This document shows, piece after piece, positions 50,139 through 58,167 of a DNA stretch of 58,167 bases. How positions within the stretch are numbered: the stretch's first letter is position 1; each line of letters opens with the position of its first letter. This stretch comes from Ministeria vibrans ATCC 50519 (Eukaryota; Protista; Filasterea): the NCBI GenBank assembly GCA_943704425.1, contig CALSCP010001441.1, positions 1 through 58,167 of the forward strand, given 5' to 3'. The notes beneath the pieces were generated by a model, which ran no database searches, was not told the origin of the DNA, and saw only the letters and a list, made by a program, of their open reading frames with translations. The position numbers and the translations under genes were made by a program.

Positions 50139-52201
50139 ATGGACGCATACATTCCAGGGTACGATTGTCGAATGTCGATTGGTTGAGTTTAGCTCACTTC
50201 TTAGTATAACAATACTAAAATATTCAAATTCTGTCACTTTCTCCTGTAGAATGTCAAACTACGCCGACTCTCCCGCCACCAATCCCATGACAGGTGACTC
50301 CACGTCAAATTGTATTCAGCCCGAAAGTTCCACTGACTCACAGACGCTCGTAAGACAAATCAGATCAAAGTAAAAATTCAAAAAAAATTGACGTAAAAAT
50401 ATACTTTTTGGTTGACAGGAGCGAATCCCCATGGACGCCCCCAACCGCATTGCGGACACCCTTGAGTCGTTGGGAGTGGTTTCCTTCCACGCTCTCTCAA
50501 AAAAAGCCAGCGAGCATCGCGAGGTGAGCCAAAGCCGGTTTGGCGCACAATTCAAAAAACACAAACTCACTGCACACTCGTAGGTGAACGATCTGCTGAC
50601 GATCTGCATGGCAGACGTCGTCGAGGCCTACCGCAAGTTCTGTGTGCAGAGAGAGAGTCGCGAAGACGAGCTGGGACGCGTGCGGGTGTCGCTGGAGACG
50701 AACGAGCGTGAGCGCAAGCGGCAGACGGACGAGATTGAGGATCTTCAGCACGACTTGAGCATGCTGCGCGAACGGGAGCGCCAGTCGCGCGAACGTGTGG
50801 GCAAGATGGAGAAGGAGGTCAGTCGCTGCCGTGACGAAGTGTCCAAAACCAAGGCGAACATGGACCATAAGGACCGCCAGTACAAGCACGAGCTGCGCCG
50901 ACGCGAGCTCGAGCATGACAAGCTCAAAGACAAGCTGACGCGGGTGCTCGCGGACCGCAAGGCACAAACGAAGGCAGGCATGGCACTGGTAAACGGCCTG
51001 AGTGCCGAGCAACGCAGTGCGCTCAACGCACACGACGAAATGTACCGGGCCGTCGCGCAAAACTACGAGGAACGCCAGGCCGAGCTCATCGAGGAGAACT
51101 CTTTGCTGCGCCAAGCCCTGTACACGACCCAACGCGACCTCGTCCACATGCTCAACCACGAAGCCGCCTTCAACGAGCAGCTGGCCGAGTTGGACGATGA
51201 CGACAACCAGCAGGCACAGAGCGAGGACGAGCCAGTGCCCGAGCTCATGGGTAGCGGTCACTTTCAGCTTCCCTTTGACATGGTGAAAGACGTACGTTAA
51301 TATATTTATTATGTATAAGAGCGCGTAATTGCCGTAATACAACAATAATAATTTGTTATGGCACGTGTAGGACATCGAGACACACCTGGAGCTGCTGTGG
51401 GTGCGACTGCGCGAGGGAATGGAGGAACGTGCGTCATCGTCAACGGGTGTCGTTGCATCATCGTCGTCCAGTCACGCACTCAATGCGGCTGAGGTGGAGA
51501 TTGCGCGCCTCAGCGACCAACTGCACGCCTTCCAGAGCCTCGTGGCACAGCAGGAGCTGATGCTGCAACAGCAGAAGAGTCACACAACGCAGCAGTCTCG
51601 ACCGGCATTCCTCGACGACAGCGCCCTGTGCGACGAGCGCGACATGATTGACAACGAGCGCGCATTGCTTGAGAAGCAGAAGGCGCACGTCGAGCAGGAG
51701 CGTGCAGCCATCTCCGACGTTAGTGCCAATCTTGTCCGTGAGCGCATTGAAATGGAGAAGCAGCGCCGCCAGTTCGACCAGGACCGCATTGCCTTCCTGA
51801 CACTCCAACAGAAGCTCACAACGCACAATGCTTCCACATCGCCATCGCCTCTCAAGCAGCAGCGCACAAGCGTTTTTGCACCAACGCCCGACCAGCGCAC
51901 TCTTCGCACTCCCCGGCGCACACCCTTGGCCTCCATTCCCTCCTCCGCCTCCAATGTCAACCGCCCCTCCTCCCTCCGTCGTGCCGCTCTCCTTAAAACG
52001 TCCACTCCGCACCGCGACCCTCACTCCCCGTCCTCGCCCCTTCCCACCCCCTCGTCCGTCCGCCTTCACGCAAATGACTTCTCCCCCTCCGCCGCTCAAA
52101 ACTTTGACGACTCCATTGCCTCTCCTTCCCATTTCCCTCTCTGCGACGATTCCTCACCCGTTCGCCAACTCTGCTTCAACGATGAGAATACCATTGCGTG
52201 A
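50139..52201 (+). CDS. SSX2IP: Afadin/alpha-actinin-binding (ADIP/SSX2IP/Msd1) coiled-coil protein
   Basis: QYKHELRRRELEHDKLKDKLTRVL and DEMYRAVAQNYEERQAELIEENSLLRQAL match recalled ADIP motifs; FQLPFDM. Confidence 0.78.
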
Positions 52202-52411
52202 ATTAGAACGGAAAAAAACATTATATCAGTACTCCATCAGTACAAACAATTTATGCGTGCATCCTGCCTGTTACCTTTTGAAATTTATTACTAATAATAT
52301 TTATAAGAGAAGAAATAGATGATCGAGAGCTGTACATAATGCTTTATTACTTCTTCGTCTTCTATCATAAATAAATGGGTTGTATTCTATCTTCGTACTT
52401 TACACTAATTT

Positions 52412-55400
52412 TCACGGTCCAAGCGCTCGCGCTGACTCAACTCCGTTACCAGAACGGTAGAAGAAAATGTCTCCGTTGTTGGGGACCCCGTCCCAATCAC
52501 TCCAAATGCGACCCACTGACAACGATTGGGACATGTTCGGATCGAGTGACTGCATACGACGACACAGCTCAACCGCCGAGATAACCGTCTCCCCTGCTTC
52601 AAATGCACACTGCTTGGGTCCCAGTGCGTCCACCAGCAGGCGTGTCAGCGTCGTTTCGTCCTCGCCCGTCCACGCCGGGGCGTCCTTGAGCGAACCAGTG
52701 ATTAACTGCCGCCCATAGCCCGGCACAGGCGCACCCTGCCACGACATGGTCAGCGTCTCCTCCACCCGCAGAGCGCCCGCGTTGCAAAAGTCGCACACCA
52801 CAAGTACATTGCACCCGCGCCACCCAACCTCGTCCTGAAGGATTGTATAGAGCGCATCAAGAGTGAATCGCGTGACTCTGCCGCCCACTGTTTCCTGTGC
52901 ATCGCTTAGCAACAAACCGCCCTTTGTATCTTCCACTCCATGGCCCAACAGGTGGACCACCAACAGAGTATCCCTTCCTGCACTACGACCCACATCCTCT
53001 GCGAGTGCCCGTGCTGCTGCAACAATTTCATTGCGCGTCACTCGATCTCCTTTGTGTCGGTCAACCACAGTGCGCACTTTGAAATCTCGATTCGTCCACA
53101 TTTCAGCGAGCTTGTCGACACTTTCGCGCACTCCCGCCAGCACGGGATTAGGTGTTGCACTATAGCGACTCACTCCCACAACCAGTGCAGCGGCATGGGT
53201 GTAGCCTGGTGGAAGCAAAACATCTACAAAACGAGAAAACAATCATTTGAACAAAGCAAGAAAGAACATACTATTCTTACGTCCTTGGGGCTGTGTCGCC
53301 ACCCACCACTGCTCCAGTTGCTCGTTGCACACGCGTGCTCCCCCCGCATGTGCCGCCAGGTTTGCACCCACAACCTCCCATCGTCGATGTGCTTCACTCG
53401 CCTGTGCCACATCCGCTGGTGAGAAGAGGGGCGCATTCGTATTGAAGGGATGGGCCGGCACAAGGACGGGTGTGCCTCGCCAGCCCCAACGCAGCGAGCG
53501 AGTGCCGTTGCACACGGCAACACAAATGCGATCCAGAGTACGCTGCACTCGAACAGCGTCACTGTCGTCGGTCAACTCAATGCGCACAAACGACTCGTTT
53601 GCGTTAAGTCGCAAGCGCAGGGGAATGCACCCCTCCATTGTCATGGCGTTGGTGCACCGCTGCGTCGCGCGGATGGGGCTGTTGAGGAGCGACTCGCGCC
53701 ACAGCGCCACCATAAGAAGGTGGAAGGTGGCGAGGGAGACAGGGAGCAGCTCGTCATGAATAAATTGGTAGAGGAACACTTGAGCAGGATGGGAGACGGG
53801 CGCATCGAGAAAGGGTGCGTGAGCGGGAAGAAGCATGGGCACAACGAGTTGCTTGCCGCGACGCAGAGCGAGACTGAGTCGCTCGAGGCAGAGCATAAAT
53901 GCAGGGACGTCAGTGACGTCGGCACCAGCGAGGAGTGGGATGAGATCGGGTTTCCGAGGCCTGAGCATGCGACTGAACTTCTGAAGCAGCGAAAGCGACT
54001 TGGGGGCCGCCTCGCTGGGTGTGACAAAAAGTGTCTTCGACTGACTTCTTGCAGCGGTCCAAACCAACCACTCTGCAACCTCAGCAGGAAACCCACACTC
54101 CGATTCGCACTGCGCTGCTGTCAACTCAGCAAGGAGTCGATTGGTGCGCAGCAGGTCACACGCATTTCCCGCCGCTTCGACCTCACGCAACATCGCCAGC
54201 GCACGCTTGCTCTTTGCCCGTCCCCACTGCGCCATCACCACCGAACACAGAAGCTCCAGTGCCCCAATCAGACGTGGCACGTCAAACACAATCGTGTCGG
54301 TGTCGCACACCCGCTGGCTCGTCGCATCTGCACGACACACCAGAATGTCTGCAGCACTCTCCAGATAGGGCACAAGACAGTCGCGGATAGCGTCCGCAGT
54401 CGGCATCATTCCACCGAGTGTGACGTGAGGCGTGTCGTTGAGCTCGAGTGAGTCAAGCGCGTCCACACTGGACATGAGTTGCAAGTTGCCCAGTCGCGCC
54501 CATCGGCCAATCAGATCCTGTGCTGCCACCATCTCCAACGGGAGCGTGCGGTCACGCACGGCCTTGTGCATCGCCGTGCTCACTGCCGACAGTCCGAGAC
54601 GGGCCCTGCTGCCCACTTGAAAAAAGGACAAACCGGACGTGTCAGGCGGCATCATGAGATGACTGCCCAGCGCCGGTCCGACCAGACGGAGAATCTCACG
54701 GGAGACAGTAAGAAGAAGGTCGGCGGGGACGGTGTTGCGGGGGAACGTGTCAATGTGTGTGCCCACGATGATGACGCGGAAGTACGACTTGTCGGTAAAG
54801 GGCACCTGGTGGGCGATGATGTGCGCCCACTTTGTGAGGTGCTCGTACTGGTGCTGCGCCTTACGAGGAAAGTTCATGACGGACAGGTCAAAGACAAGAA
54901 CGTACACAGACTCGGAACCCATGAAGAGAGCCGGAAGAGAGTCGTACATCGACTCGCCTACAAAGTCATTGGTGAATCGTCAATAAATTGCATCATGGAT
55001 CATGTATGTTGTACCGGCAAAATCAAATGTGTCCAAGTCAACGTGCTCTTCGTGGATCTCATTCGCCAGCAGTCCTCGCACAAATGCCATTGTGGTGGAC
55101 ATGGCAGCCGAGGATGGTGCCGACGGAGAGGTGGTTGGCGGTGGAGGGTGATGAGGGTCGGTCGTGATCGTTGTGTCAGGTGTAGGTGGGCGTGGGACAG
55201 TAGCGGAGTCACTTGCTGTGTGCACATGCAAGGAGGGTGTCACCGATAGTTCAGCGGGACCTTCGTCCTCGTTGCTCTCCTCATCAACTGCCAGAAGTTC
55301 CGTCGTCATCCGATCCTTCCCTTCTACATCCTCCTCTTCTTCGTCGTCGTCGTCGTGTCCAGCAAGGAGACTCGCCAGGCGCAACTCGTCCAGTGGAACA

Positions 55401-57712
55401 GTCTCAAACACACCCGTTCCCGCATTGTAGACCATTCGCATTTTGTGCACACGAGTGGCAACGGAGCGGTCTTCCTCGTCCGGCAACTCTTCTCTACGCA
55501 GTGCAGCCACCAGAGCCGTCTTGCCTGCCTCGGTCGCACCCAAGAACAGCACTTTGATCGACCGACACTTTACTGAGCCACGTTTCATCGCAGCGGAGAA
55601 GACCATGTGAATTTTCGTCGTTCTAAATACCATCGATATAGTAAGACTTATTGTTTAAAACAATCTCGCATCAAAGCAAAATGTAAACTTACGACGCCGG
55701 GACGTGATCCAAGTCGCCGCTGCCTGTGGTCGTGGCAAACTTGTGCGAGCCGATGACAGTTGCTGACTCCACATTTCTCTTACCAGGTTCGTCGGCTATC
55801 CACCGCTGCCCATTACAAGCTGACCGCTCTCCCAAGTCGGTTCGCAACTCGCATTCAATAGACGGAGACGATGTCGCCCCAAAGTTTGTAATGCTTCGGG
55901 ATGGTTGAGGAATTGCAGACGCGACAGTATCTACAAAAAAAACCCCAGAGATAGATCAGACGTCGACGCCGTAACAATACAAAATGTCGAACCATGTGTT
56001 CTTGTCGTTTCTGAATCATTTTGTGACGCGCGCTGAATAACACGTAACTCAGGACTGCTCGGAGCAACAGCGACTTCAGCGGTAATTTCCAATGATGTTG
56101 TTGTAGTGTGACTCCGTTTCGTCGAGGGAGAAACTTGGGGTGTTGTTTGAGTAGTCCACGTGTGAGTTTCAGTTGAAACAGAAGCGGCATCTGTCCGTGA
56201 CAGAAGAAAAGATGATGTGCGATCACCAAAGTTGTAGCTAGGAGAACCCGTTACTTTTGCCATATTTTGGTCAATGTTCAGCACAACGTGACCGAGATCG
56301 TTCATCATGGCCATCAATTTGCGTAGGGTGCAATTGCCTCGTTTGCTTGAGTTGCGAGTGAGATCATCCTCGTCTCCGCAGTCCGCACTGTCGCTAGATG
56401 TATCGTCGCTGAAATTGAACGCGAGTTGAGTGGTTCGATGGAGTGAGGGCGGTGGATTCCCTGGCGGCTTCCTGAACTTTAATGGTTCATCGATGACGTG
56501 CGATGTACCCACTTCGCTGGTCTTGATAGAGTCGTTAGGAGAGAGGTGACGAGCAGCAGACGATCCCAAGGCAATTGAACCAGAAGACACTGGTACGACT
56601 AAAGAAGGGATTGGAGCGTTGTGAACAGGAAACAACGGGTGGTAAATGATGAACTCGCCGCAATTGATGTTATCGGCTGCCCAAGGCAGTCTTCGAATGA
56701 CGCATGACTGACGAAAGTAGCCGAGGTCTTCGTTGGTGTGAAGTTGTTTATATTCGGCTATGATGATAGGAAGGGCAATGTTGTTGATATGATGTTGAAG
56801 TACGGCGATGGTAAACCACATACGGGGCGACCCTTTCGAGTACGGAGGAGAGTTGAAAATGTACAGTGTGTTGTTGGGTGAATCGTCCCACAAAACGCGT
56901 CCCAAAACCTCGGACAACAAAGTCGTCTCTCTCAAAGAGAAAGCCTGATGAGATGCAGTGGTGGCCGCCAAGCCTTGAAAGGAAACTTTGGCTTCGAGTT
57001 TTTGTAAAGAGGCGCGAAATTTGGTGCCAGACTTTTGAAGGCACGTCTGTGGAGTCGAGAGCTTGCTGAAAGCTTCTGCTGCGTGACAGGCATCAACAAT
57101 GACGAGGGTACTTTGCTTCCAGCGATCTTGTCCCTCGAGGTCAAGATCGAGACGAAGCTTCTCGATCGAATAGAGGCCGTCGTACAGATAGGGTTCGCTG
57201 TAGAGGGAGGTATTGCTCAGAGCAATACCAAAACACTTATCGGCGCTTTTGTCAGCGTTAATTCCATGACCAGCGATGTACACCACAAGGTTATCAGATG
57301 GTGTGGGCGTTCGATTTGGTATCATATCGGCGACAGAGCGGATGGCGTCTAAAATGTTCTCCCGAGTCGGACTGTTCGTTCGCCACGAAAGCTGACGAGT
57401 TTTGCAAAGTTGTTCAGCAACACGACACGTCTTTTCGTCCAATGCGCGTTTGGTTGCGTCCAACACCGTCGTTGTTGGCATCGGAGAGTCACAGAGAACA
57501 AACGCATGGAAGCCAATGCTGGCAAGGTACACAGCAACGTTACGCAATGAACGAGGAACCGCATTGAGCGGTTCAAGATAGAGTGGACCAGTGGGGACGT
57601 TTTTCTTCAACTTCAAGTCGTAACGCATGCTGTCGTACGCGCTGCGGCCTACAAGGAGAGCGTACCGTGCTGGTCCGACAACATAAGGTGCTGATGGTGG
57701 AGACGTAGCCAT
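52412..57712 (-). CDS. Caspase-like (C14) - linker - Roc GTPase - COR-like - caspase-like (C14) fusion, ~1664 aa. Exons 57712-55993, 55930-55784, 55723-55693, 55622-55015, 54957-53281, 53223-52412
   Basis: Five GT-AG introns of 57-70 bp join four ORFs in frame (4995 nt total). Motifs: YIAGHG/IVDACH; FLGATEAGKT, DFAG, VGTHID; HLLGHG/VCDFCNAG. Confidence 0.82.
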
Positions 57713-58167
57713 TTGAAAAGGGGTGTGGTATACGAAAAAAAATTGCAATATTCAGTTACTTTAGAAAATAGAATACTTGGGACGAAGATCTATGGTCGAA
57801 GAATTGGGATGACTTGCTGATTAGTCATCGACGACACTTCACACTCAGTGAGCTCACCAAGCCTACAGAGCCTGTCAGCCAGACTCAGCCTGAAGGGCTT
57901 TTACGCCCCGCTCTGATCACTGATAAGACCTGAGAATGTTGTTTTTTTAATTTTTAAGAAGTTCACGCTGCGATGAAAACAAAAAAAAAAAAACAAGGGT
58001 ACCGCAGCGAGTATCTAAGTAACGCCAGGCATCCTGGCACACTCACATCCGCAGCAAAAAACACATGGCCTTGCGACTGTGCCGGAGTCTAACGACGAGA
58101 CCTACACGACGGCAGACGAACTGCGAGGAGAGAGAGGCTAGGGGGACGACCCCCCTCCCTCCCTCCC

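Follow-up and report, generated by a model that had tools for sequence, protein, structure and literature searches.

The window analysed here is a stretch of 58,167 nt (positions 1 to 58,167 of contig CALSCP010001441.1) from Ministeria vibrans ATCC 50519. Between 52363 and about 57723 it carries one minus-strand gene of five exons and four introns, which is spliced, transcribed and polyadenylated according to RNA-derived contigs from four runs (X1, X5, X6 and X7, from at least three studies, one of them a seawater metatranscriptome). Its coding sequence starts at the ATG at 57712, stops at 52412-52414 and has 1,684 codons (exon lengths 1720 + 238 + 608 + 1677 + 812 = 5055 nt). A previous, sequence-only reading of this DNA had given a protein of ~1664 aa, which the summed exon lengths correct to 1,684 aa; the four open reading frames and the motifs that it quoted are all present. 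It had also proposed five GT-AG introns. Four of these were confirmed by CT..AC joints in the contigs (GT..AG on the minus strand), including the one with the weaker GTTCGA donor at 55992, which is used in all four runs. The fifth candidate, 55724-55783, was rejected, as none of the four runs shows it spliced and contigs are unbroken over 55693-55930. This segment is part of exon 2, and because it has 60 nt and no in-frame stop, its retention leaves the frame unaffected. Every exon pair is bridged by contigs, so that one transcript carries the N-terminal caspase reading frame together with Roc, COR and the C-terminal caspase. As these contigs show canonical splicing across the junctions, the proposed joining of the reading frames into one gene stands and separate genes are rejected.

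Table 1. Coordinates of the gene and its parts in the window.
Feature	Position	Strand	Basis
Whole transcript	52363..57723	-	Contig coverage; depth drop past 57723 (5' end approximate); T24 loose end = poly(A) site, 3' end
Exon 1, coding part (573 codons + 1 nt): N-type caspase and linker	55993..57712	-	ORF; contigs 56150-57695 and 55993-56469
N-type caspase-fold domain (aa ~13-365)	56618..57676	-	Pfam, model, Foldseek, family alignment
Intron 1, 62 nt, phase 1, GTTCGA...TAG	55931..55992	-	Joint 55930/55993, all four runs
Exon 2, 238 nt	55693..55930	-	Unbroken contigs in X1, X5, X6, X7; 78 stop-free codons
Intron 2 (third in the sequence-only reading), 70 nt, phase 2	55623..55692	-	Joint 55622/55693 in X1, X6
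Exon 3, Roc N-terminal half	55015..55622	-	Pfam Roc match, sequence
Intron 3 (fourth in that reading), 57 nt, phase 1	54958..55014	-	Joint in X1, X5, X7
Exon 4, first part, Roc C-terminal half	54554..54957	-	Profile alignment to LRRK2 Roc; VIA
Exon 4, second part, COR-A and COR-B	53281..54553	-	AF2 model, Foldseek, VIA, Atlas
Intron 4 (fifth in that reading), 57 nt, phase 1	53224..53280	-	Joint 53223/53281 in X1, contig reaching poly(A) tail
Exon 5, C-type Peptidase_C14 domain	52412..53223	-	Pfam, paralogue conservation, PDB profile match
3' UTR and poly(A) site	52363..52411	-	T24 loose end before 52363 in X1 (poly(A) tail of the minus-strand mRNA)
Recombination tract: Roc-COR cassette with two introns	53169..55600	-	blastn, 94.4% DNA identity to WD40-type paralogue on contig C1443

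Domain searches and structure predictions were made exon by exon, on single exons. The two caspase-family domains claimed from the sequence were both recovered above the Pfam Peptidase_C14 cutoff of 21.4 bits, with 24.1 bits for the N-terminal and 32.9 bits for the C-terminal one. The N-terminal catalytic dyad is intact (His149 at 57266-57268 in AGHG, Cys209 at 57086-57088 in DACH), and its His-Gly and Cys are invariant among 12 members of this N-type family, the nearest relative being 38% identical. The model of this domain (pLDDT 69.3, pTM 0.77) gave MALT1 as the best structural match in Foldseek (E 2.8e-6), along with procaspases 1, 7 and 9 and GPI8; a search of PDB sequences with the N-type family profile gave a weak metacaspase match (E 0.73). 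The domain is followed by a low-complexity linker (55994-56665; about 290 aa), probably disordered, which had no other match anywhere in the genome. The C-terminal domain is a Peptidase_C14 domain and a putative protease, with an intact dyad of its own (His at 52940-52942 in LGHG, Cys at 52784-52786 in DFCNAG). Among 20 C-type paralogues the GHG histidine is invariant and the cysteine nearly so, and the C-type profile found its best match among PDB sequences in Arabidopsis metacaspase-4 (E 0.0026), of which the p20 part alone was covered. For both caspase domains the best NCBIfam match was the bacterial EACC1-associated (conflict-system) caspase type, below the cutoff, and far below it for the C-type domain.

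Between the caspase domains lies the Roc domain followed by COR, as had been proposed. The G1 motif GATEAGKT is found at 55517-55540 in exon 3, G3 DFAG at 55015-55024, completed across intron 54958-55014, and G4 VGTHID at 54749-54766, where it aligns to VGTHLD of LRRK2 Roc in a profile alignment. An acidic, Pro/Thr-rich insert of ~125 aa (~55052-55414) separates strands beta2 and beta3. Since an intron and this insert interrupt the domain, the Pfam Roc score on exon 3 stayed below the cutoff of 27, at 19.9 bits over profile positions 1-41, the P-loop half. Searches of PDB sequences by profile gave weak matches to LRRK2 Roc (E 0.18 to 1.1), and Pfam gave no match on exon 4. As sequence-only detection failed, COR was assigned through structure prediction. 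The AF2 model of Roc-COR (pLDDT 84.7) returned Roco proteins for all of the top 33 Foldseek matches (E 1.6e-7). With VIA, model residues 16-135 matched LRRK2 Roc 2zej at Z 10.3, and residues 136-556 matched the Chlorobium tepidum COR structure 3dpu_B at Z 14.1; matches to LRRK1 and LRRK2 were at Z about 12, and Atlas COR-A and COR-B clusters were matched at 0.95-0.97. Queried with exon 4, phmmer found four matches, three of them fragments and one a protein of 546 aa, in a set of 1.84 billion representative proteins; relatives outside the lineage were untraceable by sequence. Pfam found no LRR, kinase, ANK, WD40, death or NB-ARC domain in any exon, in agreement with the claimed absence of LRR and kinase domains. 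Together, the profile and model data support a layout of caspase fold, linker, Roc, COR-A, COR-B and Peptidase_C14, with proteolysis and GTP binding as predicted activities.

The genome contains two expanded families to which the parts of this gene can be traced. At least about 40 loci belong to a WD40-Roc-COR-caspase family, whose members nearest to this gene carry WD40 repeats upstream of Roc (for instance on contigs C1443, C1080 and C1441, at 74-80 kb and 98-103 kb of the latter). About 20 loci form a separate, Apaf-1-like caspase-NB-ARC-TPR/WD40 family, in which relatives of the N-type caspase are combined with NB-ARC and TPR or with APAF1_C and WD40. The Roc-COR tract has DNA breakpoints at 53169 and 55600 in blastn. 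Trees of Roc-COR and of the C-terminal caspase are incongruent, with SH-aLRT values of 99-100, and dS is 0.12 in the tract versus 0.92 for the C-terminal caspase exon. Judged by these comparisons, the Roc-COR tract is a recent exchange, the C-terminal caspase is from a different branch of the WD40-Roc-COR-caspase family than Roc-COR, and the N-terminal caspase is an effector-family domain of the caspase-NB-ARC-TPR/WD40 proteins, placed where the paralogues have their WD40 sensor. The gene is thus a three-part mosaic built from two lineage-expanded families. With its RNA support, it shows that modules pass between the Roco and NB-ARC caspase systems by recombination at introns.

The dN/dS ratio is about 0.2 on exons 4 (C-terminal half of Roc, and COR) and 5 (C-terminal caspase) and 0.62 on exon 3. 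The low ratio indicates that exons 4 and 5 are under purifying selection; the caspase-Roc-COR-caspase fusion itself is unique to one gene, no other locus in the genome having the exact layout. In a gene on contig C2175, an N-type caspase immediately precedes a C-type caspase, an arrangement which suggests that the pairing of the two types has been retained. Several family members contain in-frame stops. An estimate of dN/dS from RNA variants was dropped, because in 53169-55600 the contigs of 90-95% similarity stem from the 94%-identical paralogues rather than from different strains.

We lean towards reading this mosaic gene as a GTP-gated protease switch in cell death or defence, by a mechanism that we infer from related systems. 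Like its counterparts in other Roco proteins, Roc-COR would switch by nucleotide-dependent dimerisation. Proximity is what activates initiator caspases and paracaspases. By analogy, the caspase that directly follows COR-B could be paired or separated by the Roc-COR switch and thereby activated. The N-terminal caspase, on its long tether, might be a second proximity-activated protease, or else an input module, pairing with similar domains in the caspase-NB-ARC-TPR proteins and linking both systems. A role in regulated cell death or defence against invaders appears likely by analogy, and it fits the family context, as the family is large, recombining and lineage-specific and has WD40-bearing members, with the Apaf-1-like caspase-NB-ARC family alongside. 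The trigger probably lies outside the protein. The switch had been called self-contained; the label is doubtful because a protease domain sits in the sensor position, and the gene has no recognisable sensor domain.

The gene might instead be an evolutionary by-product, a recent, intact and transcribed chimera that is decaying or has no function beyond those of its parents, the loss of WD40 leaving its product unregulated or inert. The recent exchange of the Roc-COR tract (94% DNA identity, dS 0.12), the unique layout, the frequent pseudogenes that the in-frame stops in the family indicate and the dN/dS of exon 3 are in keeping with this idea. We nevertheless consider it unlikely, as the frame is open over all 1,684 codons, all four runs, seawater metatranscriptome included, show its expression with correct splicing, and exons 4 and 5 have low dN/dS; moreover, the N-terminal domain keeps its invariant His-Gly and Cys despite 38% identity to its nearest relative, and an N-type caspase is also paired with a C-type caspase on C2175. 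The N-terminal caspase could also be an integrated decoy. Such decoys are known from plant NLRs and typically copy defence effectors. Here, a pathogen caspase inhibitor or protease that binds or modifies the putative bait would release Roc-COR and fire the C-terminal caspase. The domain does occupy the exact position of the WD40 sensor of the paralogues and has its origin in the effector of a different defence-like family, but a pure bait would not need its intact catalytic dyad, and no pathogen factor is known, so that a decoy seems distinctly improbable. To a docking function we give slightly less credence still: the N-terminal caspase would bind like domains on activated, apoptosome-like oligomers of caspase-NB-ARC-TPR proteins and so recruit a Roco-controlled second protease. 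If true, proteases would act in two tiers, and the cascade would tie STAND and Roco death switches together in a unicellular animal relative, as a pre-animal analogue of initiator/executioner caspase cascades made from fused modules.

Other alternatives concern the gene itself. It is very unlikely that the locus consists of two transcription units, with Roc-COR-caspase made from an internal start as the main product and a minor read-through transcript alone adding the N-terminal caspase. In X1, contigs have a depth of 95-119 over exons 1-2 and of 251-418 over exons 3-5, and X5 has the same 3'-to-5' trend; this roughly four-fold drop (418 to 95) from 3' to 5' exons may reflect 3' bias or a shorter isoform lacking the N-terminal caspase, which contigs do not distinguish, and contig depth cannot rank parts of one gene. 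A 3' bias is, however, enough to explain the gradient in a poly(A) mRNA of 5.4 kb, the exon 1/2 junction is crossed in X1, X5, X6 and X7 and the exon 2/3 junction in X1 and X6, with canonical splicing, and Roc on its own would be without upstream sequence. An assembly artefact that fused parts of different paralogues might be feared with so many near-identical paralogues in a genome of 2,860 contigs. We regard it as next to impossible, as independent RNA contigs agree with the window, free of mismatches, over both breakpoints and every junction. Junction-spanning RNA contigs thus reject an assembly chimera as well as two genes.

Caspases, Apaf-1-type ATPases and Roco GTPases such as DAPK1 and the LRRKs are core to animal cell death and immunity; to our knowledge, their pre-animal history is poorly known. 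In the genome of M. vibrans, a marine unicellular filasterean and animal relative, both switch types are fused directly to caspase effectors. The gene offers a compact natural test case for the ability of a Roc-COR switch to control a caspase-fold protease, and the outcome would bear on how Roc-COR governs the output domain in LRRK2. Neither the Ministeria genome paper (PMC9492541) nor a 2026 aggregation paper (PMC13366479) mentions caspases, NB-ARC or Roco proteins. The architecture had been thought unlike that of any described protein. This holds for the caspase-Roc-COR-caspase layout, of which we found no description in the searched literature, but Roc-COR with a C-terminal caspase effector has already been described, in that literature from bacteria only (PMC8195603).

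Among known systems, the WD40-Roc-COR-caspase paralogues share with this gene the Roc-COR cassette (up to 95% amino acid identity), the Roc insert, a caspase of the C-type family and the intron that precedes its exon, but they have WD40 upstream of Roc where this gene has a caspase of another family and a unique linker. LRRK2, LRRK1, DAPK1 and the C. tepidum Roco protein likewise have a Roc with a VGTHxD G4 motif, then COR-A and COR-B, and the match spans all of exon 4 (Z 11-14); identity is only 8-15%, however, and the gene differs by its large Roc insert and by its predicted protease rather than kinase output. For the C. tepidum protein, a nucleotide-dependent monomer-dimer cycle is described (PMC5714945). 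With the Apaf-1/CED-4 apoptosome and fused caspase-NB-ARC-TPR/WD40 proteins the gene shares an N-terminal caspase of their effector family and presumed activation by proximity, whereas it has no NB-ARC and its NTPase switch would be the Roc GTPase. The caspase/hemoglobinase fold and His-Cys dyad are common to MALT1, metacaspases and the bacterial caspase-like GSU0716, but identity is about 10-14% and no MALT1-type death or Ig domain is present. Bacterial LRR-AP-GTPase(Roc)-COR proteins have C-terminal effectors that include caspases, with a predicted role in defence against invaders (Kaur, Iyer, Burroughs and Aravind, eLife 2021, PMC8195603). They resemble this gene in the order of Roc-COR and a caspase-like effector and in having many paralogues per genome, whereas the gene described here is eukaryotic and spliced, lacks an LRR sensor and has a second caspase at its N-terminus. 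The effector after COR is variable in the bacterial proteins; here the variation lies in the N-terminal module and in the branch of the caspase used.

Contigs of four public RNA-type runs (X1, X5, X6 and X7; three organisms and a seawater metatranscriptome) were aligned to positions 52300-57900 (5,601 bases). All runs holding the gene were marine. Four GT-AG joints were found on the minus strand: 55931-55992 in all four runs, 55623-55692 in X1 and X6, 54958-55014 in X1, X5 and X7, and 53224-53280 in X1. Exons 1, 2 and 3 were bridged by single contigs, as were exon 4, exon 5 and the tail, and these contigs matched the window with zero mismatches in the unique parts. The poly(A) tail of the minus-strand mRNA appeared in the RNA contigs as a 24-T loose end before 52363. 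The five exons sum to 5,055 nt, corresponding to 1,684 codons and a stop, and the intron phases are 1, 2, 1 and 1 from 5' to 3' along the gene. A sequence-only reading had joined four ORFs, all present as it described, through five introns. Its junctions keep the frame on the minus strand, and the joint with the donor it considered weaker, that of intron 55931-55992, was present in every run. Its remaining intron, 55724-55783, was removed in none of the four runs; as this segment is 60 nt long and open, its retention alters only the length of the protein.

Exons of the gene under study
Feature	Positions	Strand	Evidence
Exon 1	57712-55993	-	RNA contigs and ORF
Exon 2	55930-55693	-	RNA contigs
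Exon 3	55622-55015	-	RNA contigs
Exon 4	54957-53281	-	RNA contigs
Exon 5	53223-52412	-	RNA contigs

The depth of the X1 contigs fell about four-fold, from ~418 in exon 5 to ~95 in exon 1, with a like trend in X5, a gradient that 3' bias could produce, as could an internal start giving a shorter transcript. Rare isoforms may also exist beside the five-exon model, which was built from contigs. X5 and X6 contigs linked 53216 to 53281 with seven foreign letters between them rather than via the 53223/53281 splice, probably representing a paralogue or strain variant near the acceptor.

Searches and structure predictions were made exon by exon for every domain assignment. The first ~365 residues of exon 1 matched Pfam Peptidase_C14 with 24.1 bits, above the cutoff of 21.4. 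Twelve relatives from the same genome were aligned to build an AlphaFold model of this domain (pLDDT 69.3, pTM 0.77), whose fold matches included the MALT1 paracaspase (E 2.8e-6), procaspases 1, 7 and 9, and a caspase-like protein of Geobacter. In the family alignment, His149-Gly150 and Cys209 were invariant. The remainder of exon 1 and exon 2 form a low-complexity linker of ~290 residues, for which a genome search returned no second match. Exon 5 also matched Peptidase_C14 (32.9 bits). Across 20 paralogues its Gly-His-Gly was invariant and the cysteine of DFC(N)xG nearly so, and the family profile matched Arabidopsis metacaspase-4 with an E value of 0.0026. In NCBIfam, both caspase domains came closest to a caspase type of bacterial conflict systems, with scores far short of the cutoff.

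Roc begins in exon 3 with the G1 motif GATEAGKT, where positions 1-41 of the Pfam Roc profile aligned with a score of 19.9 bits, short of the cutoff of 27. About 125 residues, acidic and rich in Pro and Thr, are inserted between G1/switch I and G3 (55052-55414, minus strand); the insert is common to the nearest paralogues, exon 3 being 87% identical to that of contig C1443. The G3 motif DFAG, whose codons are divided by an intron, follows the insert. Exon 4 gave no match in a Pfam search. The leading Foldseek matches in the PDB to its structural model, built on 23 paralogues (pLDDT 84.7, pTM 0.75), were all Roco proteins, with C. tepidum Roco first (E 1.6e-7), followed by LRRK1, LRRK2 and M. 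barkeri Roco2. VIA-align gave Z scores of 14.1 for model residues 136-556 against the C. tepidum COR domain, 10.3 for residues 16-135 against the LRRK2 Roc domain, 12.6 to LRRK1 and ~12 to LRRK2 residues 1398-1870. The G4 motif VGTHID pairs with LRRK2 VGTHLD in the alignment, and exon 4 falls among COR-A/Roc/COR-B clusters in the protein atlas. These exon-by-exon assignments establish that the caspase-Roc-COR-caspase layout with two intact dyads is real, Pfam, models, fold matches and family alignments all bearing out this part of the initial proposal.

We surveyed the genome assembly (29.7 Mb, 2,860 contigs) for related loci. At least about 40 loci matched exon 4, and a similar set matched exon 5. 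WD40 repeats precede Roc in the nearest paralogues (C1443, C1080, C1441 at ~100 kb, and C1887), making WD40-Roc-COR-caspase the standard layout of this Roco family. The contig of the window, C1441, itself bears two further members on the opposite strand past the window's end (77436-80248 and 100571-102899). One of them shares the Roc-COR cassette at 95-96% identity, so that probable exchange partners are physically linked. Some members (e.g., C883, C1339, C2586, C85 and C894) have in-frame stops in COR or caspase exons, so pseudogenes, or genes whose introns went unrecognised, are among the family.

Relatives of the N-terminal caspase, at most 38% identical to it, belong to a second expanded family with 26 matches, such as L052 (C1679), L053 (C2217), L054 (C2675), L055 (C1613) and L051 (C556). 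In the ORFs scanned, of 850 to 1,990 aa, the caspase fold comes first and NB-ARC second, followed by many TPRs or by an APAF1_C helical domain and WD40. This domain order marks them as STAND proteins of the Apaf-1-like kind to which a caspase is fused at the N-terminus. No Roc-COR match lay near these relatives' loci, with one exception and two contigs holding distant or fragmentary matches only. The exception, C2175 (L047 2963-4923, plus strand), carries the closest relative, 38% identical, in a predicted tandem-caspase gene without Roc-COR between the two domains. The N-type domain joins a caspase of the C-terminal type in frame via a 59-nt phase-1 GT-AG intron predicted from DNA (L047 4053-4111); in this C-type copy the catalytic Cys is replaced by Gly (CDCGNGG).

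Positions 53169-55600 are 94.4% identical in DNA to C1443, and the likeness stops abruptly at both ends. This tract starts in the Roc exon, 22 nt past the acceptor, and runs through both introns and the COR exon to 55 nt into exon 5. In the exon 4 tree the gene groups with C1443 and C985 (SH-aLRT 100). In the exon 5 tree it groups with C1887 (99), C1443 and C985 forming a separate clade (99); for the remaining paralogues the two trees are largely congruent. DNA breakpoints and trees alike identify the gene under study as the recombinant. Compared with C1443, exon 4 has a dS of 0.12; compared with C1887, exon 5 has one of 0.92. The breakpoints, conflicting trees and unequal dS values show the gene to be a three-part mosaic: a STAND-family caspase with a unique linker, a recently exchanged Roc-COR cassette, and an older C-type caspase exon. 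Phase-1 introns flank the exon 2-exon 4 block, and the lone intron of the C2175 gene occupies the position of the last intron here, both of which fit module exchange at introns. Roc-COR may have been inserted into a tandem-caspase gene, or lost from a caspase-Roc-COR-caspase gene. The gene is clear evidence for an exchange of modules between the Roco and STAND families. dN/dS is 0.62 for exon 3 with the insert and ~0.2 for exons 4 and 5, a signal of purifying selection on these two exons individually; the fusion as such is unique to this gene.

Roc-COR is a nucleotide-dependent dimerisation device in C. tepidum Roco and the LRRKs, and caspase-fold proteases of the initiator-caspase and paracaspase kinds are activated by induced proximity. 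As the C-type caspase lies directly C-terminal of COR-B in the Roco family, in the simplest model two C-terminal caspase domains would be paired or not according to the state of the GTPase cycle. The input in the paralogues would be the WD40 propeller, the position of which is held here by a caspase domain with an intact dyad on a long linker. On this flexible tether, the N-terminal caspase could be a second protease activated within the same dimer. Other possibilities are that it serves as bait, or that it is itself the input and pairs with its counterparts in the caspase-NB-ARC-TPR proteins.

The sequence-only reading knew of no described protein with this architecture. For eukaryotes, we found no description of Roc-COR-caspase in the literature searched; in bacteria, Roc-COR with a caspase effector has been described among LRR-Roc-COR-effector systems (PMC8195603). 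Sequence searches for relatives outside the genome gave almost nothing. The gene adds a new layout, proven by RNA. Its domain set, the recombining lineage-specific expansion and the bacterial parallel together suggest a role in cell death or defence.

Two plus-strand ORFs of 238 and 266 aa, rich in coiled-coil-like sequence, occupy 50584-52201 and end ~160 nt from the poly(A) site of the gene, making them convergent neighbours across a very short gap.
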